Below, in pieces: positions 1-26,192 of a stretch of 43,402 nt of DNA. Both the position numbers and the translations under genes were made by a program. The stretch comes from Ministeria vibrans ATCC 50519 (Eukaryota; Protista; Filasterea), in contig CALSCP010000157.1 in assembly GCA_943704425.1 (NCBI GenBank), forward strand, positions 1 through 43,402. Direction: 5' to 3'. How positions within the stretch are numbered: position 1 is the first letter of the stretch; each line of letters begins with the position of its first letter. The notes under the pieces are model-generated. The model saw only the letters and a program-made list of their open reading frames with translations. It was not told the DNA's origin and ran no database searches.

Positions 1-330
1 GGTTCATCACACTCTACATTGATGTGCTGCCGCTGCAGACCACTCTGCGCGTGTGGGGGAGAGGGAGAGAGATCGGACGGGTGTTGGGCGCAATTTTCGT
101 GTTCGCGACGGAAATAGGAAAGAGATGCGATGCAAGCGATTGATCATGGTTTAGTGGCCAAGCCAGTGGTGTGGGGTGAGTGGGGCGTGAGCAAAGCAGT
201 GACATGAAGGAGAAGGCGAAATATGACAGTGGTGTGAAAAAAAAAAAAAAACTCGATTTGTGGAATTTTCCATTTGCAGAGCTGCAGAGCGCCCAAGTTC
301 AAGACGTTCTCATACAGCCGACCATTTAAA
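1..330 (-). other. Possible 5' end of a gene running off the left edge of the window
   Basis: Polypyrimidine tract plus CAG acceptor at ~47 followed by an open frame to the window edge (SGLQRQHINVECDE...); candidate ATG|GT donor near 325. No recognisable homology. Confidence 0.25.
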
Positions 331-1062: not shown

Positions 1063-4075
<3,013 letters not shown>

Positions 4076-4246
4076 AAACGAATGCATGCTAAATATGCGC
4101 ATACAAAATTGAAAATAGAGAGTTGAGAGAGATCAATCAGTCAATTCGGCATTTGCGATCAACAGCAAGTTCAAATTCCAAATCGGAAGACGGAAATCCA
4201 AAATAATTGAAGAATCGATTTCTTGAACCATTGCACTTGCCGTCTA

Positions 4247-5021
4247 ATGACGCTCCATTGTGGTGTCGACGGTGGATCGGGACCATCGCTTACGCCGTTG
4301 GTCGACTCGCTGCGAAATCTCAACAATGAATTTTCAAATAATTCAAAATATTACGTCCCAGAGATCTTTCCGGAGGAGCTTGGAGCGCAGCAGTCACAGC
4401 CATGGCAACATCACACGCACCCATTCGACAATGGCCGGGGGGAAGACACATGTGGAGTGGCGTCGTCGAGTGAGCTGGAGCGTCGTGCGGAAACACTGAT
4501 GCGGCGCTGTCGGGAAGTGCTCGCCACTGAGCCGTCTGTGAGGAGGTACGGCGGTGCGACGCCGCACTGTTCTACCAACCACGACAGAAGGCTGGCAATG
4601 GCGCAAGCGGGTGCGTGCGCCGGAGACTGTGCGCAGCGAGAGGGTTCAAAGAAACATAAGGTATCGCATGTTTGAATAATGCAAAGTACATTATACTGAT
4701 GGACTATTTTAGAGAATTAAGAGTCCCAACGCAAAGAGAAAGCTGACGTCCCGTCGAGTAAAGGCTGACACGTTGACGGCGTCCACGCAAACGGAGGGGA
4801 GGACGCAAACGGAGGCTCTGGAGCATGACGAGCGTCTCCTTGACGACGAAATGTACTCGATGCTTTTCAAGCGCGTTGCCTATTTTGCCGAGCAGATACG
4901 GTGAGTCTTGTGAAACAAACCAGAAGAGAGAAGTTGATTCTGTCTGAGATTGACGGATCTTGTTTTTTGTTATGACAGACGGGTTGATGAGTTGCTCGCG
5001 GACACATTAGAGGACGAGTGA
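4247..5021 (+). CDS. Hypothetical protein, 3 exons, tandem TQT motifs, C-terminal helical segment
   Basis: ATG 4247; introns 4661-4712 and ~4900-4978 (GT-AG) keep the frame open to TGA 5019-5021; ends DDEMYSMLFKRVAYFAEQIRRVDELLADTLEDE. Confidence 0.65.
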
Positions 5022-17121: not shown

Positions 17122-19923
17122 TCACTTTTTGCTCTGATCCTGCTCGAGCAGTATGACAAAGCGCTCGAGGCGGCGCATAACTTCGCGTCCGGCGACAATG
17201 GCCTCGGCAAGGTCAACGCGGTGCCCGCTTAGAAGCGTCCGCAGCTGCTCTGTGTTGCCACTCAATGTCTCCATGGCGTCGGACGCGTCCATCTCCAGCG
17301 CCGTGTGCTGTGTCTCCAGCTGCATCCGCACCGAGTTGCTGGCGGCGCGCAGACCACTCTGGATGCGCCAGAAGAGCACGACGTCCTCGCATTCGAGCCC
17401 ATTAGCGGCGCCCTTGCGCTCCCCTGCTGTCGTGCCCTGTTTGCCCCGGCAGAACCTTGCTGCCTCTGCACTCCGCTTGGCAAACTCCTCGGCGTACATT
17501 GCCTCGTACACCTGCTCAATTTCCGTCTTGCTGGTGCCCGTCCCGTCCTCATCGTCAAACGACACGCCCCGTCGCTGCACAAGATTCTCACGCACCGCCG
17601 TGCGCTGCGTCGCCGACAGACGCGCCGGGGGTAGTGATCCCGCAGGCGTCGCATTTATGAGATGCTGCAGCTCCTCGTGAATACGCTGGGCGCGTCTCTG
17701 CACAGGCGTCGGCGAGCGCCACTTGACCCAGCACTGCCACACACCCGTGGGTCCCAGGACCTGCTGAAGTTGCTCGGCGTGCGCTTGCGCTTGTGCGTGC
17801 ATGCGCTCCAGTTGGAACGCACACGCGTCGTCCCATGCGCGGCCGTCAAGCGGTACATCGCGAAATGTGTCGCCCACTCGCGCTGCCAGACTGGCCACGG
17901 CCGAGGGAGGCCAGTCGCGGTCGCGCGCACACTCCGTCTCCACATACGCACACACGTCCTTGAGCACCGCACCCGCCTCGCCCCACGCCCCCAGACTGTC
18001 GACTAGCTCCCGGTGGAACCCGTCAAGAAGCACACGCAGCCCCACATGCACGCAGGTGCGCGACAGTCCTCCAAGGTCGTTCCACTCGCGCAGGCGGCGC
18101 TGCGAGTGCGTAGCAAACGTCATGGGCGACACCACATTGGAAGTGACCCCACCGGAGGTGGTCGACGAGAAGGTCGCGTCACCTGCGGCACTCATGTACA
18201 CTTCGTGCAGCAGCGTATCGCCCACCGAACCCCACAGGTGCGCAAGGACCGTCTCCTCGACAGCACGCGGTGAGGTGGTGCGCGCCGACGCCTGCAGTGC
18301 GTCCAGGACACGATGCTGAAAGCGCTGGTAGAGAGTATCACGCGACTCGGGCGCGCCTTTGAAAGTCGACTTCCACTCGCTCTCGCGCAGGTCCAGTTCG
18401 CGCTGGATGCGCACAGCCTCCTCGCGCACCGACACGCGCACCAAGCGCCAGAACTCATGATCGATGCGCGAGGCAAGGGCGCGCGTCGAGCGCTGGTCGT
18501 GTCGGATGTGTCCGTGGCGCACCAGCTTGCTCTGACGGAAGAAGTCGTTCTCATGGCGTTTAATCGCCTCAATGCTGTTATCGTCGGGCGACGCAGTGCC
18601 CGCAACCACGGCAAAGTACGCGAGTGCATTGAGGTTGAACACGTTGCCCTTCATAATCTCCGCCACGCGCTCTTCGCGCATCTGCTGCTCGGCCACGTCC
18701 ACCTTGGTCAGCACGACAATGGTGCGTGTGCCGTCCGGGTCGGCCGTGCGCACCACGTCGGCTGCGTTGCTGCGTTCGGCGTCCGTCGACCCGTCCTGCA
18801 CACACAAAATGAGTGCGTTTGGGTTGCTCATATGTGTGCGGCACATCTCTTCAATTTCGCGCTTGGTCGACGCCGGCATGCTGCGCGTGGGCGCTGCAAT
18901 GACGCCCGGTAGATCGACTAGCACCACACGACGCAGCCCAGGCCCCTGCACCGACAGCGAGATGGTCTCTGTGCTAATAGCGCCCCCAGCACGCTCTGCG
19001 CTCTTCCACATGAGCTCTTTGATGTCGGTGCGCAGTCGCTCCAGCTCGGTCTCCTTGCTGATCTCGTAGCGTTGCGTACCGATCCACGCCAGGCGCTCCG
19101 GCCCTTCCTCGAGCATCACCTGCACTGGCGCGCGTGTCATCATTTCGCCGCCACCGCGCGGGAACACGCGTGCGCCCGTCATCACCTCGAGCACCGAGGT
19201 CTTGCCGGCCGACTGGTCGCCGACGACTACGACGCGTGGCAAATGCTCCTGTACGCGATACTCAGCGCTCGCTTGTGACAACAAGTCGAGAATGTCGCTG
19301 TATTCGCTGAGGAGCGAACCGGCGGCGCCCGACCGGCGTCCGCCCGCCCCGTCCTGCTGCAGTTTGCGACGCAGTCTCAAGAGCTCTGCCATGAGCTTCT
19401 CATTCTCCGACTTCCAATGGGCACTTTCGCGCCGTGCGTCGTCTGCCTCGGTGCGCAACAGCTCCTCTTGCAGACGCGTCGCCTCGTCTTCGTCTTGGCG
19501 ATGTTGCGCCTCGACGTCGTCGTCGTCGTCCTTGGTGCCTTCGTCCGCCGCCACTGTTCCCGGCATGGGCTCGAGGGCACGGTGACGAGGCGGCGGGGGC
19601 GGCTGCGACGGCGGCAAAGACGAGGTCGAAGTCGACTCGATGGCGCGACCCGTCAAGTCGTGCAGCCGCGCAAGAGCCGCGTCGCGCATTCCGTAGAGAC
19701 GGTCTGCCGCGTCAGCCATGTTGGGATACTGGCTGAGCTGTGCCGACAGGTAGGCGGCGCCCGACGTCACCACCGCAACGCCCAGAAACCCCGTGCGCAT
19801 GATCAGCGTTCGCATTCCGCCCCCACCCGCCCCCGTCATCAGCGTGCGCCCCCCCGCGCCCCCTGGTGGCTTTATCAATCGTCCTGGCATCAAGCCAAGG
19901 CGGCTCGATGCTAAGCGAAGCAT
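17122..19923 (-). CDS. OPA1: Mitochondrial dynamin-like GTPase OPA1 (animal type), intronless
   Basis: Arg-rich presequence MLRLASSRL, TM segment, LPRVVVVGDQSAGKTSVLE, FPRGGGEMMTRAP, LVDLPG, CVQDGSTDAERS, VLTKVD, LECEDVVLFWRIQ: closely matches metazoan OPA1. Confidence 0.95.
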   Translation of the reverse strand: MLRLASSRLGLMPGRLIKPPGGAGGRTLMTGAGGGGMRTLIMRTGFLGVAVVTSGAAYLSAQLSQYPNMADAADRLYGMRDAALARLHDLTGRAIESTSTSSLPPSQPPPPPRHRALEPMPGTVAADEGTKDDDDDVEAQHRQDEDEATRLQEELLRTEADDARRESAHWKSENEKLMAELLRLRRKLQQDGAGGRRSGAAGSLLSEYSDILDLLSQASAEYRVQEHLPRVVVVGDQSAGKTSVLEVMTGARVFPRGGGEMMTRAPVQVMLEEGPERLAWIGTQRYEISKETELERLRTDIKELMWKSAERAGGAISTETISLSVQGPGLRRVVLVDLPGVIAAPTRSMPASTKREIEEMCRTHMSNPNALILCVQDGSTDAERSNAADVVRTADPDGTRTIVVLTKVDVAEQQMREERVAEIMKGNVFNLNALAYFAVVAGTASPDDNSIEAIKRHENDFFRQSKLVRHGHIRHDQRSTRALASRIDHEFWRLVRVSVREEAVRIQRELDLRESEWKSTFKGAPESRDTLYQRFQHRVLDALQASARTTSPRAVEETVLAHLWGSVGDTLLHEVYMSAAGDATFSSTTSGGVTSNVVSPMTFATHSQRRLREWNDLGGLSRTCVHVGLRVLLDGFHRELVDSLGAWGEAGAVLKDVCAYVETECARDRDWPPSAVASLAARVGDTFRDVPLDGRAWDDACAFQLERMHAQAQAHAEQLQQVLGPTGVWQCWVKWRSPTPVQRRAQRIHEELQHLINATPAGSLPPARLSATQRTAVRENLVQRRGVSFDDEDGTGTSKTEIEQVYEAMYAEEFAKRSAEAARFCRGKQGTTAGERKGAANGLECEDVVLFWRIQSGLRAASNSVRMQLETQHTALEMDASDAMETLSGNTEQLRTLLSGHRVDLAEAIVAGREVMRRLERFVILLEQDQSKK

Positions 19924-20299
19924 TGTTTTACCAAAAATGCAGAAGGAAGGAAAAAAATTAGTGAAGTTCAAGTTCGATTAGGTTTCGTTTTCCGAATGAC
20001 GTGATCGCTTTTTTTAAAATAGACATCATATTCTGTAGCGTGCACTATAAATTATACAGTCATAAGTATCAAATAAAACAATCTCTTTAGAGGAACTGTC
20101 AGAGTGGGAAGGCAAATATAATTCTATAATTATTATTATAAAAATTGTACGAATTATTTTGTTGTTTAATCAAACTTATAATCTCTCTCTCTCGCTAAAC
20201 ACACTTTTAAAGGGGGAGGGGAGGAGGAAACATCAAACAAAAAGAAGAAAACAACAAAACAAAAAGAAAAAAAAACGACACACAAGGCAGAAAGATTTT

Positions 20300-21892
20300 T
20301 TAGTTCCAGATTTTGAGGGTGGCATCCCAAGAGCCGGTGCAGAGAGCAAGGCCGTCCTTGCTGACACCAAGGCAGGCGACACGAGACTGATGGCCGTCGA
20401 GAATGCCGACGTCGACGCCCTTGACGGCATCCCAGATGCGCACGACGTTGTTGTCGTAGCCGGCAAAGAGGAGTCGCCCCGACTTGCTGAATGCAATTGA
20501 CGTAATGCCCACTTCGTCGCTCAAGGCCAGGTTGGCCACTTCGTTGTCCGATCGCATGTCAAAGATCTTCACTGAGCCGTCATCCGAGCCAGTTCCAAAT
20601 GACTAATGAAATACAGACAGCGAAGGGGAGAAAGAGTGAGAAATAAAAAAAGGAGATTTAAGATGAAAGAAAAGGTCATCTTACCTGATAGTTGGGGAAC
20701 CAGGCAACACTGTTGATGTCACCAGTGTGGCCGAAGAATGACTGAACTGACTTGCCGGAGCGCACGTCCCAGACCTTTGCGACATGGTCACATGAGGCGG
20801 AGACGAAGAGGTTGGGGTTGGACTCGTTGACGGCAATGGACATGACATCGGCTGTGTGGCCCTCGAGACGCGACTTGCACACCTCCTGGTTGATGTCCCA
20901 CACACCGCAGGTGCTATCGCCCGACGACGTGATCATGGTGTCGTCGGAAACAAAGCGGCAGCACGACAGATAGCCGGTGTGGCCCTTGAGAACGTGGTGT
21001 GCCTTGAAGTTGCCCTGTTGCGAGGTCAGACTGTACACGGAGCAGTTGTTGTCGAGGCCGCCGCACGCCACATAATTACCTGACGGTGCATATGCACACG
21101 TCATTACCCATGATGATGTCAATGGAATTGCGTGCACTGCAGGAGAGGAGAAGAAAGAACGTTAAGAGCAAACAAGAGAACAAAAAAAAAACAAAAAAAG
21201 CCACTTTTACCTTTGTTTGTAGTGTACGCATCCCAGACGATCAATTTACCATCCTGTGATGCACTGACGATGTGTCGACTGTCGTTTGCCCAATGCATGG
21301 AGTAGATTTTTGACAAGTGGCCCTGTGGGAAACAAAGGAGGAAAACCGCACAGGTTAAAAAAAGACGCTCTCTCTCTCGTTCGCTTTGCTTACCTTCAAG
21401 TTCCGTGCTTGTCGCATCACAACGCGGCCTGTGTCGGGAAGATCGCCACATGTCTGGGCGAGGTTGGTGTCCTATAATAGCAAAAGGGCGATGAGAAGAA
21501 GGAAGAAAAAAAATTCCACAAGAACATTATTCGATGGGACAGGCAAAAACAGGCAGGAAATTGGTGGGTTGACATTACAAGCGAGAGTGCACATGGTCAA
21601 GGGAGACGTAAGGGGCAGGAAAGGTTGAGAAGGAGAGAATGGAAGAAACATATCGATTCGATCTATTGAGTGTGCGCGCGCGAGAGAGAGAGAGACAGGA
21701 GGGAGGGAGCAAGGGGAGAAGACAAGCACGAAGACGGAGAGGGCGGTGGGTTGTTGAGAGAGTGTATGGGGTTGGGGTTAGGGAATGACGCAAAAGACGA
21801 TTTGCTTACGGCTGCTGAAGCTTGCACGTCCCTTCGCTTGTTCTGCAGCGCTTCCGCCTCTTGCTTGAGGGCATTTACTTTTGCGTCAGCCA
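20300..21892 (-). CDS. GNB: Heterotrimeric G-protein beta subunit (start codon unresolved)
   Basis: [10 protein letters not shown] coiled coil, [53 protein letters not shown]; five exons with GT-AG introns. Confidence 0.96.
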
Positions 21893-21901
21893 CTGCGTAG
21901 A

Positions 21902-21905
<4 letters not shown>

Positions 21906-21976
<71 letters not shown>
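21906..21976. repeat. (GA)n/(CT)n microsatellite forming the polypyrimidine tract of the first G-beta intron
   Basis: Perfect dinucleotide run ending 12 nt from the CAG acceptor at 21893-21895. Confidence 0.95.
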
Positions 21977-21981
<5 letters not shown>

Positions 21982-22395
21982 TTAGTGGAAATCACAGAGG
22001 TTTATGTTCCAAAAAAAAGAAAAAAAAAAGAAGAAGAGGCTGGAAGAAGAGGCATGTAAGGGGGTGCGGAGGGGAGGGGAGCCGTGAACACGGTAGTGTG
22101 GATGGGGAAAGCGAGGGAGGGCGAGGGAAACGAGGGAAGGAGAGACGGGTGGGAAAGCGGTGACGGCTGACGAAGTGGCAAGAGACGGCCCTAGCGGTGC
22201 ACAGGCCCTGGGGCGCGCATCTGGCGGCGCCATCACAGAGCAATGCCTGTCCACGGGCGTGTCCCAGCAACCAATGAACCCTTGGCGTCTTCTCAGAGTC
22301 GTTTTACACCTCCTTTTTTTTTTTTTTTTTTTTTTTTTGCCTTTTTTGCGTTGTGCTTTGTTGTATCCGACGCGCACGACACGACACGCCCAAGA

Positions 22396-22472
22396 ACGCT
22401 GATGAACATCCTACAAATCCAACGCTTAGTGGCGACTCAACAAGAATCGTCGTGTGCTGATTTGTCTGAGCT
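22396..22472 (+). ncRNA. Box C/D snoRNA 1, guide antisense to LSU rRNA AAGCGUUGGAUU (flank of the A-loop)
   Basis: C box cTGATGA 22399-22405, guide aatccaacgcttagtg 22416-22431, D'-like gcga, C' gtgctga 22454-22460, D CTGA 22466-22469. Confidence 0.8.
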
Positions 22473-22672
22473 TTTTAACCCTGAGTTTTGCTTTGAGTGG
22501 TCCTTTGTGTTGTGTCTCGTTGTGTCTTGTCGCTTCTCATCCGTTTCTGTGTTTGTGTGCTCAGGAGTCGGTCGTGCTGGTCTGTGCGCCACATCGATTG
22601 GAGGAGAGGACGGTAAGCAATGGCCCATTTGTTAGAATGTTTGTGTTCGTGTTGTGAGTGTGCAAATTAAAA

Positions 22673-22771
22673 ACTATGAGGAAAGTGTAATGACGGGCGG
22701 ACAGAGAAGCCACATCCCAAAAGTACAAACCCGTGGCATCTATTTCAATGTTGAATGTCATTCTTCTGAGT
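22673..22771 (+). ncRNA. SNORD43: Box C/D snoRNA 2, U43/snR70 homologue (SSU decoding-site Cm)
   Basis: C ATGAGGA 22676-22682; TGACGGGCGG-A-CAGA 22691-22705 is antisense to SSU CCGCCCGUC and identical to the human U43 guide+D' as recalled; C' atgttga; D CTGA 22766-22769. Confidence 0.9.
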
Positions 22772-22936
22772 CCTGTCATGTTGTGTGTCTCATGTGCGCA
22801 ATATCTCGTTGACTTGGCTCACACGTCGCTTTGTCTTTCAGATTCCGTTTCTCTCTTGTGTGCTTGCGACGACCGTCTTTGATTCTATAATCAGGTACAT
22901 TTTTGTTTTTTGAGCGAGATTTATAGAAATGTGTGT

Positions 22937-23023
22937 CAGTTGGAAGTGATTAGAAAGCGCTAAACTTTTCAAAATTATTTTATGTTGAGAAAAATGTTGT
23001 TCGGTTCATCGATGATTCAACTG
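22937..23023 (+). ncRNA. Box C/D snoRNA 3, guide antisense to LSU rRNA GAUGAACCGAAC
   Basis: 8-bp terminal stem cagttgga/ttcaactg, C GTGATTA 22946-22952, C' atgttga, guide gttcggttcatc 22999-23010, D ATGA 23012-23015. Confidence 0.82.
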
Positions 23024-23214
23024 TTCCGTTTTGTGTTTGTTTTTATTCTCTTGTCGTGTATGTGTGTGACTCATTCAAGCAATGTGTAGATATGGATATA
23101 GACAGCATACGCATATCAAAGCGAAGGCCCTAGAAATAGATAGGTGAGGCAGAAAGAAGAAAGGATGTGAGAGACACATTGTTGTTATGAGAGAAGTGTG
23201 TGTTTGAGTTGCGA

Positions 23215-23328
23215 GTGGAAAGGATGATTCCAAACCCGAAATACAATAGGAAGTGCCGTCTGATTTGGGCCTGGTGCGCATCGGCGTGCCAGTGTCCCAC
23301 TGCTGCATAAATGGGTGTCTGATTCTAT
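23215..23328 (+). ncRNA. SNORD49: Box C/D snoRNA 4, U49 homologue (LSU peptidyl-transferase-centre Cm)
   Basis: C-like AGGATGA 23221-23227; AATAGGAAGTGCCGT-CTGA 23245-23263 antisense to LSU CGGCUCUUCCUAU and matching the recalled human U49 guide; D CTGA 23319-23322; terminal stem gtggaa/ttctat. Confidence 0.88.
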
Positions 23329-23539
23329 TTTTTGTGTCCAATATTGTTTCTTACGTTTCTTTTTTTTTGCTCAATAATAACAATTGTTTTTTGTTTTAGA
23401 TTTTGTGTGTGTTCCGATTTGGCACAAATCACGGAAGGGTTCTCTTGTCAAACAAAACAATACACAAACCCTTTTTTTTTTTGAGATCGAATTTTTTGAA
23501 AGATTTCATGGTGTACAGAAAAGAGAACTTTTGTTTTGG

Positions 23540-23986
23540 TTAATCGTCTGGGTGAGAGACAGTGTGGGAGAGAGCCATATCCCAGTACTGGTCGACGTTT
23601 GCGGCGCGGAGGACGTCCCGGGCAGCCATCTCAGTCGCACAGCGACGCGTCTTGAACCCTTGGAACTGGCGGGCGGTGACGACGCCCTAGAGGGAGGAGG
23701 GAAGGGGAGTCAGGGGTGTCGTGTGTTGATTGTGTGAGTTGTATGTGTATGTGAGAGAGAGAAAAAAAAGTGTATGTAAAAGAAGGAGAAAGACACAAAA
23801 GTGATAGAGAGAGTGCAATTGTAGTTGTCCTTTCTATTATCGAATAGGTGATTTGTGCGTGTGCGCGCTTCGCGTGTGTTTTGTGTGTGTACCTCCCAGA
23901 CAAGGAAGCATGCATTTGCGCGCGGCTCGTCGTTATCTGCGTTGGCCGCCCCCGCCAGTGTGCTGCTTTCCACATTATCCTCCTAT

Positions 23987-24025
<39 letters not shown>

Positions 24026-26192
24026 CGACCATGTTCATATTCCGGGGGCGAACACCTCTGTTTCACACAGTAAAAGTGAAACACTGACATATCTCTTCTT
24101 CATAGACAGACACACACACACACACATACGCAACAAGAATGTTGTAGTCATACCTCCCAGTCAATGCGCGTGAGCAGCAGGTGCTTGTACTTCTTGAGCT
24201 GCTTCGGCCCTCCCTCGACCACAATGACATTCACATCTCCATGCAGAATCACACACCCCGTCAAATTTAGCTGCTCTGCGTTCTTGTCCACTTTAAACTT
24301 CTTTTGTGCGTTGCTCAGATCAAGAACTCTACATTACAATATTATTTAAAAAGAGAGTGAGATACAGTCACAGCAGGAACAATCGCCTCTCTCTCTCTCT
24401 CTCTCTCTGTATGCTCTGTCTTACCGGTAAATTGCGACATGAACCATAAGTGATGTATCTTCCGTGAGCTTGCGTCGTGCTTTGGCTTTGCGCTCCTCGT
24501 CCGTCAGTTTCCGGTCCGCATTGGCTACAATTCAAAAAAAAAATCAACGATATAATGACACACAAGCACACTACACTGTAAGAGAGTATCATGGCCTACC
24601 CTGTTCGTGTTTCCTGAGGCGCTCGGCCATTTGATTGCGAACAGAAAGCTCAATAGACGTGGGGTCCATGACCGCCTCCTTGCCCTTGGCCGACATCATG
24701 TTGCGCAGCGTCAGACGGTCAGATGGCGCAATCTCATACCCAAACTGCACTCGCTCTTGCTCCTCCTTTAGGCGCTCTTGTCGTCGCTGCTTCCTCAATC
24801 TACATACAAAAGATGTGTTGTATGTGTGTGTGTGAATAGGGTGAGGGTGCCTTCACACACGAGATGCATATGTACTTTTTGGTCTCCTTGGCCGTGAGAA
24901 ATAGGGGCATCTGCGGGACAGTCGTAGGCTGGCCGGCCGGTGCGACCTGCACAGGATGCTCAATAAGATGCGTGATGCCGCGCAGGGTGAGTGGGTCGAC
25001 GGGCCCTGCACTGTATCCCTCGGTACCCTCCGGGAGCACTGCCAGGTCCCACCACTCCATGTCGGGCACCTTTTCGTCCTCGTCGACAGCTCGCTCGGGT
25101 GCCAGCAGCGCCAGACGCGTTGCCGCGCTCACGTTGGATGTTTTCGCTGCTTGCGCAATTTTGGCTTGTAGCGCTTCAAGTTGGGCGCGTGTGCGTTGCA
25201 TCTGTGCCTGTTGCTCAAACTTGCCCTTCTCGTGAAACTGAAAGGCGCGCTTAGCTCGTCGTGCGCCGCCCCCCTGTGCCCCCTGCAGCTTGTGGTCAAA
25301 GTAAGGGTTGTCGGGCTGCATGGCTGTCTCTGCCGGGTCTGCCATAGCCATTTTGGTGGCTCGCTGTGCGCGCAGATTGGCTTGCAGCTCGGGTTTGCGC
25401 TGAGGCATGGCAGCCTCGGCGGCCGCCTTGGCCGTGGCCGCGTCAGGTGCCGACGACAAAGACGCCAGTTGCGCTACCAGTCGCTCTTGCCCTTGCCGGT
25501 CCTGGGTGCTTCGCTGGCCCGCAAGCATTGCTGTCGGGATCACTTGCGGAGCAACCACCGGCTGGGTCTCTTCGCGCTGTTTCCGAGCGCGCTCCTCGAG
25601 CATGCGCTTCGCATTGGCCACCATGGCCTTGACTGCGTCCTTGTCCACTCCAGCACCAGCGGGCACAGCAAGCGCCGGTGGGGGCGCGGCCGTGGTCGCT
25701 GCAGCAAGTGAAGGTGCAGCTGGGGCCGCGTCGAAACGGGATCGCTTTGCGGGCTGAGAAGAGAGGAGAAAAAGAGCGAAACGAGTGAGCGACGATCGAT
25801 GGCTGAAATATTATTATTAAAAAAGACCATCGCATACCCGTTCGCTGAGGATAGCAGCAGAATCGGCTGGTCGCTTCGGTGCGTCGAACTGTCTGAGAGC
25901 AATTGAGGACTGCGGAAGATAAAGAGAGAAGAGAGAGAGAAGAGAAAGGGGTTTGAAAAAGGAGCGACACTCTCCCTTTGCGTACCATAATCAGTCGCTT
26001 CTCTCGCATCAGTGCACTGACAAACGCAGAGGTTTTGTCTTTGAGGAGGGGCCGCAGACGCTCGGCTGCCTTCTCCGCCGTGCTGCCGTTCTGCAGAAGC
26101 TGCAGGCAGACGCGCGCAACGGCCGGCGGGGCCTGCTGCGTCGCCAGGAAGGGAGCCAACGCCTGCTGGATCTCTTCAACGGGGACGTCCAT
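23540..26192 (-). CDS. PRPF3: U4/U6 snRNP protein Prp3 with N-terminal PWI-like domain
   Basis: [86 protein letters not shown]; TAA ending 23540. Confidence 0.95.

Follow-up and report, generated by a model that had tools for sequence, protein, structure and literature searches.

Non-coding host genes that carry snoRNAs in their introns are best described in animals, where UHG/SNHG1, GAS5 and the Drosophila dUHGs have a common design: a spliced multi-exon gene with short exons, no meaningful ORF and one C/D snoRNA per intron. UHG, GAS5 and SNHG hosts have a 5'TOP start and a spliced RNA sensitive to NMD, and their exons are less conserved than their snoRNAs. The position of the snoRNA in the intron follows a rule, some 70-80 nt separating it from the 3' splice site and some 50 nt from the branch point, both downstream (PMC5519232). 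In Neurospora crassa, the UHG-like clusters I-V are non-coding, with short ORFs (159-267 bp), and carry one C/D snoRNA per intron, spaced from the splice site as in animals; some 3' splice sites are used alternatively and one snoRNA is encoded in an exon, according to the same study, which likened the clusters to animal UHG/gas5 (PMC2780460).

We analyzed the snoRNA cluster found in a stretch of 43,402 nt of Ministeria vibrans DNA (hereafter the window). With a probability of roughly 80%, we consider it to be a short gene of the + strand, transcribed by RNA polymerase II and spliced, without coding potential, that delivers box C/D snoRNAs from its introns. The features of this locus are as follows:

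22315-22346, + strand: T25-G-CCTTTTT tract, the point of assembly ambiguity, where DNA and RNA contigs all break
22340-22564, + strand: 3' part of intron 1; the acceptor CAG (22562-22564) is used, and the donor and exon 1 are on another contig, C1031
22393-22489, + strand: candidate snoRNA 1 in intron 1, functional counterpart of SNORD36/snR47 by guide and boxes
22565-22612, + strand: exon 2 (48 nt), with GT..AG borders and junctions in the runs X1, X2 and X3
22613-22841, + strand: intron 2 (229 nt, GTAAGC..CAG), skipped in RNA contigs and collinear in the run X19
22673-22773, + strand: candidate snoRNA 2 in intron 2, functional counterpart of SNORD43/snR70 by guide and boxes
22842-22894, + strand: exon 3 (53 nt), with GT..AG borders and junctions in RNA contigs
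22895-23089, + strand: intron 3 (195 nt, GTACAT..TAG), skipped in X1, X2 and X3 and collinear in X19
22937-23023, + strand: candidate snoRNA 3 in intron 3, with stem, boxes and guide, no Rfam family
23090-23143, + strand: exon 4 (54 nt), joined to exon 3 in three runs and followed by the donor TAG/GTGAGG
23144-23399, + strand: predicted intron 4 (256 nt), acceptor 23399 unobserved in use; retained in an X3 contig
23213-23330, + strand: candidate snoRNA 4, functional counterpart of SNORD49 by guide, boxes and stem
23400-23484, + strand: exon 5 of the initial annotation, unsupported by contigs

Splicing was observed for the central part of the gene. The junctions 22612/22842 and 22894/23090, both GT..AG, were present in contigs of X1, X2 and X3 (three RNA runs from two studies), with skipping depths of 237, 309 and 131 for intron 2 and of 237, 309 and 80 for intron 3, respectively. 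By contrast, neither junction was found in the DNA-like run X19, where introns 2 and 3 are collinear. Since flanking minus-strand genes show CT..AC junctions in the same runs, X1, X2 and X3 are RNA runs. The RNA evidence consists of unstranded assembled contigs, with small RNAs, levels, starts and ends outside their reach, and gaps in contig coverage count as no proof of absence. The exons of 48, 53 and 54 nt with canonical splice sites and the two junctions between them, as predicted by the initial annotation, are borne out by these data. That annotation had also proposed four introns with one snoRNA each. One snoRNA per intron was found fully for introns 2 and 3, across the contig break for intron 1 (whose acceptor and donor exon are confirmed) and as a prediction for intron 4, whereas exon 1 lies outside the window and the junction of intron 4 was not seen. 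A genome-wide search for a second copy indicated that the snoRNA cluster is single copy. Both neighbours are on the opposite strand, PRPF3 being convergent and the coiled-coil gene on C1031 divergent. The neighbourhood also contains an OPA1-type dynamin gene, whose nearest clusters are animal; this was the one hint in favour of the unicellular relative of animals supposed by the initial annotation.

The four snoRNAs share a similar position relative to the splicing signals. From the end of the D box to the last base of the intron, we counted 80, 72, 74 and 77 nt for snoRNAs 1 to 4, the fourth value assuming the predicted acceptor 23399; from the end of the D box to the A of a CTCAY motif, the distances were 55, 52, 58 and 51 nt (counted by hand, the branch points being inferred). 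Distances of 95, 72, 74 and 77 nt had been given before; the last three stand, and the first is corrected to 80 nt since the D box of snoRNA 1 is at 22481-22484. These values support the 70-80 nt position rule, with the same placement as in animal hosts (PMC5519232). In addition, an Aquarius homologue is encoded in the genome (Aquarius_N_1st, PF16399, 360 bits, E 1.2e-106, G000:C1890). As judged from the sequence, the spacing fits a splicing-coupled snoRNP assembly of the Aquarius/IBP160 type.

For the last intron, the predicted junction 23143/23400 was absent from the contigs of all three RNA runs (X1, X2 and X3), in which gaps prove nothing. Instead, a minor junction 23143/23250, using an alternative acceptor at 23249, was observed in X1 at a depth of 8.5 versus 237, and X3 contained a collinear read-through contig, 23088-23426, at a depth of 80 versus 131 at the exon 2/3 junction. 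The X2 contig of exons 2-3-4 (depth 309) ends 6 unaligned letters past 23143. No leftover contig depth was detected over 23427-23474, nor over 23400-23474 in X1 or X2, and exon 5 would run into the 3' end of the PRPF3 mRNA, which is convergent and aligns from 23475 on. Since 23143/23400 was unseen and only the minor junction and read-through contigs were recovered, the intronic placement of snoRNA 4 is putative. The missing junction, the read-through in X3, the abrupt end of the X2 contig and the lack of depth over 23427-23474 would also suit a gene that ends with exon 4, alone or with read-through, in which cleavage and trimming of the precursor's 3' tail would free snoRNA 4, or in which it would come free once the first step of splicing alone had taken place at 23143, comparable to the snoRNAs that some fungal clusters encode in exons or tails; the exon-encoded snoRNA of Neurospora cluster III provides a precedent (PMC2780460). 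We regard this alternative as possible but rather doubtful. Contig gaps prove nothing here, and several points argue against it: the minor junction shows a canonical donor, TAG/GTGAGG, in use, the predicted acceptor comes with a long pyrimidine tract and with a D-box distance (77 nt) that fits the other three introns, and the depth over snoRNA 4 is intron-like in X1 and X2 (15-17 versus 237-309).

The longest ATG ORF in the local spliced model encodes 53 aa; this length is reached by 30% of shuffled models, and five ATGs precede the ORF. Local ORF counting revealed no long ORF. SnoRNA introns inside mRNAs are common in ribosomal-protein genes, and the exons could be those of a protein-coding gene or specify a micropeptide, the snoRNA introns then sitting in an mRNA. 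The 53-aa ORF does span exons 1-4 of the local model, and one frame is open for 79 codons through exons 2-5. However, the shuffled models and the upstream ATGs weigh against this proposal, as do the size (48-54 nt) and AT-rich composition of the exons and the lack of a same-strand coding gene either upstream, where the gene on C1031 is divergent, or downstream, where PRPF3 is convergent. A coding host is, in our view, very unlikely. Overall, the junctions, the guides, the absence of a meaningful ORF and the spacing support the GAS5/UHG-style non-coding host initially proposed.

A search for exon 1 or its donor inside the window found neither. In X1, X2 and X3, the RNA contigs have loose ends of 29-255 letters before the acceptor 22564/22565, and these are an exact and unique match to C1031:49-77, then GTAAGC. 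Exon 1, which had been placed in the window, is thus joined by RNA to exon 2 from C1031. The exon joined to acceptor 22565 ends ...TTGCAACG in the RNA contigs; its end is at about C1031:48 (minus strand), at the end of this 38.6-kb contig, and the exon continues upstream on C1031. In host orientation, the terminus of C1031 reads ...CAACG/GTAAGCGTCCCAGAATGTG-T21-CCTTTTT, and the same 7 letters CCTTTTT follow the T-run on both the C1031 end and the window. An unspliced contig spans 22351-22593 at a depth of 10-15. Since the end of C1031 shares the T-run of window 22315-22346, the adjacency of G-beta and the snoRNA cluster is probably an assembly misjoin at the T-run, and the gap between G-beta and PRPF3, in which the gene had first been located, is probably a product of this misjoin. 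The far end of C1031 is a (TC)n/(GA)n repeat, and bridging it to the left flank of the window left the order unsettled.

With exon 1 on a separate contig, cis-splicing needs the assembly to be wrong or incomplete at the T-run. Alternatively, exon 1 would be at a physically separate locus and trans-spliced to exon 2, or two structural haplotypes would exist, one of them expressing the host. This proposal draws on the window assembly, which runs from G-beta through the T-run to the snoRNA cluster without interruption while exon 1 is at the end of C1031, and on the copy number, both flanks and the cluster being single copy (for the left flank of the window, from a search of the genome for a second copy). 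However, C1031 ends in a T-run followed by CCTTTTT, as is typical when a homopolymer breaks a contig or causes a misjoin, and every short-read contig, DNA and RNA, breaks at this tract. Moreover, G-beta is without its first exon in the window (depth 14 versus 2012), as a misjoined or incomplete assembly at the T-run (22315-22339) predicts, and joining C1031 to the window would make intron 1 about 270-280 nt long, similar to the other introns. Trans-splicing or structural haplotypes therefore appear highly improbable; if true, trans-splicing of exon 1 or a haplotype-specific promoter would be an unprecedented driver of a snoRNA host gene. Evidence for a misjoined or incomplete assembly at 22315-22339 is a by-product of our analysis.

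We then considered the snoRNAs themselves. A typical box C/D snoRNA is a stable RNA of some 70-120 nt that binds fibrillarin, Nop56, Nop58 and Snu13; a terminal stem joins its C box (RUGAUGA, close to the 5' end) and its D box (CUGA, close to the 3' end) into a k-turn with tandem G.A pairs, and its guide, which forms at least 10 bp with rRNA or snRNA, stops 1-2 nt short of D or D'. Four box C/D-like RNAs with predicted sizes of 87-118 nt are located on the + strand between 22393 and 23330, and all of them have C and D boxes with both GA dinucleotides of the k-turn kept. All four guides pair with the organism's own rRNA and obey the fifth-nucleotide rule, with duplexes at 18S A618 (13 bp), 18S C1637 (10 bp), 28S G1306 (13 bp) and 28S C3070 (13 bp with one mismatch). 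Complementarity to this organism's rRNA had been anticipated, and so had a C/D snoRNA with an rRNA guide in every intron; boxes and guide are indeed present in all four intervals, although the predicted junction of the snoRNA 4 interval was unseen. The 5.8S rRNA was looked for in the assembly and not found. A search of the window (87 kb, both strands) for anchored guides forming 12 or more Watson-Crick pairs gave 4 places, of which 3 are in the cluster (two real guides and one antisense of them). Looser matches of 9-10 bp were equally common with reversed rRNA (83 versus 86).

At gathering thresholds, Rfam gave no match in the whole window. Permissive scans gave partial matches, centred on the guides, to SNORD36 (18.7 bits for a gathering score of 30), SNORD43 (15.4 for 45) and SNORD49 (18.1 for 37). 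Since these scores are below the gathering thresholds, snoRNAs 1, 2 and 4 were classified as functional counterparts by guide and target, and not as scored family members. In comparison with RF00049, RF00221 and RF00277 (SNORD36/snR47, SNORD43/snR70 and SNORD49), their guides match the consensus exactly or almost exactly, as do the D or D' boxes next to them, and their targets are the corresponding conserved rRNA positions, whereas the sequences outside the guides are unrelated.

SnoRNA 1 has a C box CTGATGA (22399-22405), a D' box CTTA (22425-22428) and a D box CTGA (22481-22484). Its D guide (22467-22479) pairs with 18S 615-627 through 12 Watson-Crick pairs and 1 G.U, leading to a predicted Am618, and the guide with the D box is identical to the SNORD36 consensus at 17 of 18 nt. 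The second guide of SNORD36 aims at a 28S site; by contrast, the D' guide of snoRNA 1 (22415-22423) forms 9 bp with 18S and weakly predicts G633. A D box at 22466 was rejected, its guide pairing poorly with 28S (9 Watson-Crick pairs, 6 G.U and 1 mismatch). The terminal stem is weak, about 5 bp with a bulge. Such weak terminal stems are common among splicing-dependent intronic snoRNAs.

SnoRNA 2 has a terminal stem of only 2-3 bp, with a C box ATGAGGA (22676-22682), a D' box CAGA (22702-22705) and a D box CTGA (22766-22769). Its D' guide (22691-22700) pairs with 18S 1634-1643 over only 10 bp (9 Watson-Crick and 1 G.U), with a predicted Cm1637, a position that corresponds to C1402 of E. coli. 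SnoRNA 2 has its guide GACGGGCGGA and its D' box, CAGA, in common with the SNORD43 consensus. Since matches of 9-10 bp are as frequent with reversed rRNA, this assignment draws on the likeness to SNORD43 and not simply on pairing. When U6 and U2 were tested as targets of the snoRNAs, the one result was that the D guide of snoRNA 2 matches U6 weakly over 10 bp, inside the background range.

In snoRNA 4, the boxes are AGGATGA (C, 23221-23227), CTGA (D', 23260-23263) and CTGA (D, 23319-23322), enclosed by a terminal stem of 8 bp (23213-23220 with 23323-23330). The D' guide (23246-23258) forms 12 Watson-Crick pairs and one U.U mismatch with 28S 3067-3079, predicting Cm3070. A guide of 14 nt is identical to the SNORD49 consensus, and the U.U mismatch beside the target C is also kept. 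SnoRNA 4 differs from SNORD49 by its length (118 nt), with an extra internal 9-bp hairpin at about 23271-23292.

For snoRNA 3, a permissive Rfam scan gave no match. A single bulged G interrupts its terminal stem, in which some 8 bp link CAGTTGGAA (22937-22945) to TTCAACTG (23016-23023), and the boxes are GTGATTA (C, 22946-22952) and ATGA (D, 23012-23015). These boxes display a compensating G-C to U-A change (C-box position 6 from G to U, D-box C to A). The D guide (22998-23010) pairs with 28S 1303-1315 (12 Watson-Crick and 1 G.U), with Gm1306 as predicted target. A metagenome scan with the guide and D box of snoRNA 3 returned 120 matches, none with a C box and terminal stem, and all were therefore taken as chance.

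A fifth snoRNA was sought in or near exon 1 on C1031, and none was found. A snoR29-like match near exon 1 was AT-rich, on the opposite strand and with an E value of 0.22, and no C box accompanied the 13-bp match to 18S found across the donor of exon 1; both were taken as chance. That all four elements are likewise chance look-alikes in an unrelated spliced lncRNA, as the sub-threshold Rfam scores, the 9-10 bp background and this 13-bp match might suggest, has a next to negligible probability given four consecutive elements whose C and D boxes are correctly ordered and spaced, all 72-80 nt from a 3' splice site, three guides identical to the consensus guides of three different Rfam families and directed at conserved methylation sites, two duplexes of a kind otherwise rare in 87 kb (12 Watson-Crick pairs), and the compensating change in snoRNA 3.

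Overall, these observations suggest a model in which the primary transcript would start on C1031, and exon 1, ending at about C1031:48 (minus strand), would be spliced to 22565-22612, 22842-22894 and 23090-23143. SnoRNAs 1-3 would be carried one per intron, and snoRNA 4 would follow the donor at 23143. According to the known pathway, the lariats would be debranched and exonucleases would trim them to the ends protected by the snoRNP. The snoRNPs may then direct 2'-O-methylation of 18S A618 (perhaps also G633), 18S C1637, 28S G1306 and 28S C3070. The D boxes end 72-80 nt upstream of the 3' splice site and some 51-58 nt upstream of the CTCAY branch-like motif, a spacing that could allow an Aquarius/IBP160-type coupling, and the spliced exons would be a by-product.

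The host gene described here, supported by RNA and hitherto unannotated, and its four candidate guide RNAs are additions to this genome, with five predicted rRNA methylation sites, among which 28S G1306 is without a matching Rfam family. The initial annotation had ranked this locus as its best candidate for an undescribed system. However, the design, the spacing and the alternative splicing are published for Neurospora crassa (PMC2780460), and the position rule is textbook knowledge (PMC5519232). Since the design is known from animals and fungi, we regard the present gene as soundly annotated but not as a new system; it can serve annotation and comparative studies of snoRNA biogenesis, and opens no new question. 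Compared with the animal hosts, it is much smaller, its exons measuring 48-54 nt and its introns some 200-280 nt, and it carries a different snoRNA set. Human SNORD36, SNORD43 and SNORD49 reside in other hosts. The fungal and yeast cluster holding snR70 also holds snR41 and snR51, whereas here the snR70-like snoRNA is found with snR47-like, SNORD49-like and orphan snoRNAs. The alternative splicing and the exon-encoded snoRNA of the Neurospora clusters parallel the 23143/23250 junction and the doubt about snoRNA 4. The "inside-out" gene design of animals and fungi, in which some 75 nt separate the snoRNA from the 3' splice site downstream, holds here too.

Contigs assembled from three putative RNA runs (X1 and X2, which share a study, and X3, of a second study) and one DNA-like run, X19, were aligned to positions 20200-25200 of the window. 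In the minus-strand genes flanking the snoRNA cluster, G-beta and PRPF3, X19 is collinear but X1, X2 and X3 skip the introns, which have CT..AC ends; those three runs are therefore RNA-derived. The same three runs, but not X19, skip two further stretches with GT..AG ends, 22613-22841 (contig depths of 237, 309 and 131 in X1, X2 and X3, respectively) and 22895-23089 (237, 309 and 80), while unspliced contigs cover the intron regions at a depth of ~10-20. Thus, the junctions 22612/22842 and 22894/23090 proposed in the initial annotation were present in all three RNA runs and absent from X19, confirming the + strand and the following exons:

22565-22612, + strand, exon 2 (RNA-contig junctions in X1, X2 and X3)
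22842-22894, + strand, exon 3 (RNA-contig junctions in X1, X2 and X3)
23090-23143, + strand, exon 4 (RNA-contig junctions in X1, X2 and X3)

By sequence inspection, we observed box C/D snoRNA anatomy in all four of the + strand elements previously proposed, from 22393 to 23330:

22393-22489, + strand, snoRNA 1: C box CTGATGA; D box CTGA at 22481-22484
22673-22773, + strand, snoRNA 2: C box ATGAGGA; D' box CAGA; D box CTGA
22937-23023, + strand, snoRNA 3: C box GTGATTA; D box ATGA; terminal stem of ~8 bp with one bulged G
23213-23330, + strand, snoRNA 4: C box AGGATGA; D' box CTGA; D box CTGA; 8-bp terminal stem; extra internal hairpin

In snoRNA 3, position 6 of the C box has changed from G to U, and the D box carries a matching change from C to A that preserves the pair between the two boxes. 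An internal CTGA, first mistaken for the D box of snoRNA 1, was dropped in favor of 22481-22484. The distance from the end of this D box to the last intron base is consequently 80 nt and not 95 nt, while the distances of 72, 74 and 77 nt for snoRNAs 2-4 were retained, the fourth being measured to a predicted acceptor at 23399. Each tail contains a CTCAY motif, a putative branch point, that lies 51-58 nt downstream of the D box and 17-27 nt before the acceptor. Such spacing would match the preference of human snoRNAs for a position ~50 nt upstream of the branch point (PMC5519232). An Aquarius/IBP160 homologue is encoded at G000:C1890:76812-77879, minus strand (PF16399, E 1e-106); the match includes one TAG, probably within an intron.

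Guides were searched as duplexes ending beside a D or D' box, using the 18S and 28S genes recovered from the same assembly. In agreement with the rRNA-antisense guides initially reported, all four snoRNAs have guides complementary to the organism's own rRNA. The D guide of snoRNA 1 pairs with 18S 615-627 (12 Watson-Crick pairs and one G.U), A618 being opposite the fifth nucleotide, and guide plus D box align to the Rfam SNORD36 consensus over 17 of 18 nt. The D' guide of snoRNA 2 pairs with 18S 1634-1643 (CCGCCCGUCG) and selects C1637; the SNORD43 consensus has this guide and the same unusual CAGA D' box. C1637 is the C that follows G in the decoding-centre motif and corresponds to E. coli C1402, a site targeted by snR70 in yeast and SNORD43 in humans. 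In snoRNA 4, the D' guide has the same sequence as the Rfam SNORD49 consensus guide and is complementary to 28S 3067-3079 except for one U.U mismatch, which immediately follows the target C3070. For snoRNA 3, which had no match to any Rfam family, the D guide pairs with 28S 1303-1315 (12 Watson-Crick pairs and one G.U) and selects G1306. Since no family reached its Rfam gathering score anywhere in the window, we name snoRNAs 1, 2 and 4 functional counterparts of these families, not scored members.

As a null, real and reversed rRNA were compared over both strands of the whole 43-kb window. Duplexes of 9-10 bp were equally frequent with reversed rRNA; those with at least 12 Watson-Crick pairs occurred in only four places, three of them inside the cluster. 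Two weaker candidates are the D' guide of snoRNA 1, which matches 18S over 9 bp (G633), and the D guide of snoRNA 2, which matches U6 over 10 bp. The only U6 snRNA match (G000:C648:2679-2741) is missing the 5' third of the model, and an N run begins a few bases past its T-run. The assembly yielded no 5.8S rRNA and covers small RNA and rDNA loci incompletely.

In a spliced exon model built in a local script for ORF counting, the longest ATG ORF was 53 aa, a length reached in 30% of shuffles, and was preceded by five ATGs. The locus has no coding gene next to it on the same strand.

Upstream of exon 2, contigs of X1, X2 and X3 all carry sequence absent from the window, 29 to at least 255 letters long and ending ...CTATTGCAAC. 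Its only genomic match is to positions 49-77 (minus strand) at the very end of C1031, a 38.6-kb contig of the same assembly. Directly after this match, C1031 reads G/GTAAGCGTCCCAGAATGTG, the slash marking the exon 1 donor, then 21 T, then CCTTTTT, where the contig ends; the window at 22315-22347 reads 25 T, then G, then CCTTTTTT, and the closing CCTTTTT has the same letters as those after the window's T-run. All short-read contigs, DNA and RNA, break at the T tract, and the cluster and its left-flanking sequence are each single copy in the genome. The simplest reading is that C1031 runs on into the window from 22340 onward, giving a first intron of ~270-280 nt that contains snoRNA 1. The window's join between the G-beta side and the cluster is probably an assembly error (a misjoin at the 25-T run) or one of two haplotypes. 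RNA depth was ~14 over 22045-22303 versus ~2000 over the G-beta exons, the G-beta mRNA contig (depth ~2000) ends at 21838, and the window shows no first exon of G-beta, the one that supplies the A of its start codon; the low depth and the missing exon fit a misjoin.

On C1031, the host gene would begin downstream of a coiled-coil gene in divergent orientation, an arrangement suggestive of one bidirectional promoter for both. The coiled-coil gene (~690-1450, + strand) encodes a small protein and runs in the opposite direction, its start lying ~400-600 nt from host exon 1; beyond it, 1655-4591 (minus strand) holds a 978-aa ORF with the look of a heavy-metal P-type ATPase, its translation judged by eye. 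The exon 1 donor region (C1031 35-57, host orientation; ACGGTAAGCGTCC then CAGA) is complementary to 18S ~740-752 over 13 bp, 12 of them Watson-Crick. As this region has no upstream C box, the match was taken as chance, and it illustrates how readily guide searches yield false positives.

For the last intron, the exon 4 donor at 23143 is canonical (TAG/GTGAGG) and the acceptor predicted at 23399, 77 nt past the snoRNA 4 D box, is strong-looking. The annotated junction 23143/23400 was in no contig of X1, X2 or X3; holes in contig cover are no proof of absence. Found instead were a low-depth X1 junction, 23143/23250, and one collinear X3 contig running from exon 3 through 23426. The acceptor of the former (AG 23248-23249) lies within the snoRNA 4 D' guide, so these transcripts cannot yield snoRNA 4. 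The abundant exon 2-3-4 contig of X2 stops six unaligned letters past 23143, and depth bins over 23400-23474 left nothing unexplained. That snoRNA 4 is processed from a 3' tail, or once splicing has gone no further than its first step, is a less likely alternative. At 23475, the X1 contig of the PRPF3 mRNA carries 30 foreign terminal letters, 28S rRNA up to ...GGGATGAACCGA, which happen to be the snoRNA 3 target region; the likeliest origin is a chimera with abundant rRNA, through template switching or assembly.

Overall, the locus holds a genuine non-coding host gene that is expressed and spliced and carries four box C/D snoRNAs. Of the four introns with one snoRNA each initially described, RNA contigs bear out those holding snoRNAs 1-3, which are intronic; the last lacks its junction. 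Elsewhere in the window, 17125-19923 (minus strand) encodes a 933-aa OPA1-type mitochondrial dynamin whose nearest Atlas clusters, with OPA1_C, are mostly animal and not of the fungal Mgm1 type, only a hint that the organism may be close to animals. A literature search on snoRNAs of unicellular animal relatives gave nothing specific; for these organisms, this would be a first description, though an expected one. Mammals and Drosophila provide the classical examples of non-coding hosts whose introns each hold one box C/D snoRNA. Such hosts have been described in Neurospora crassa too (PMC2780460). What had been presented as an undescribed system is a host-gene design already known from all three, and its interest is modest.
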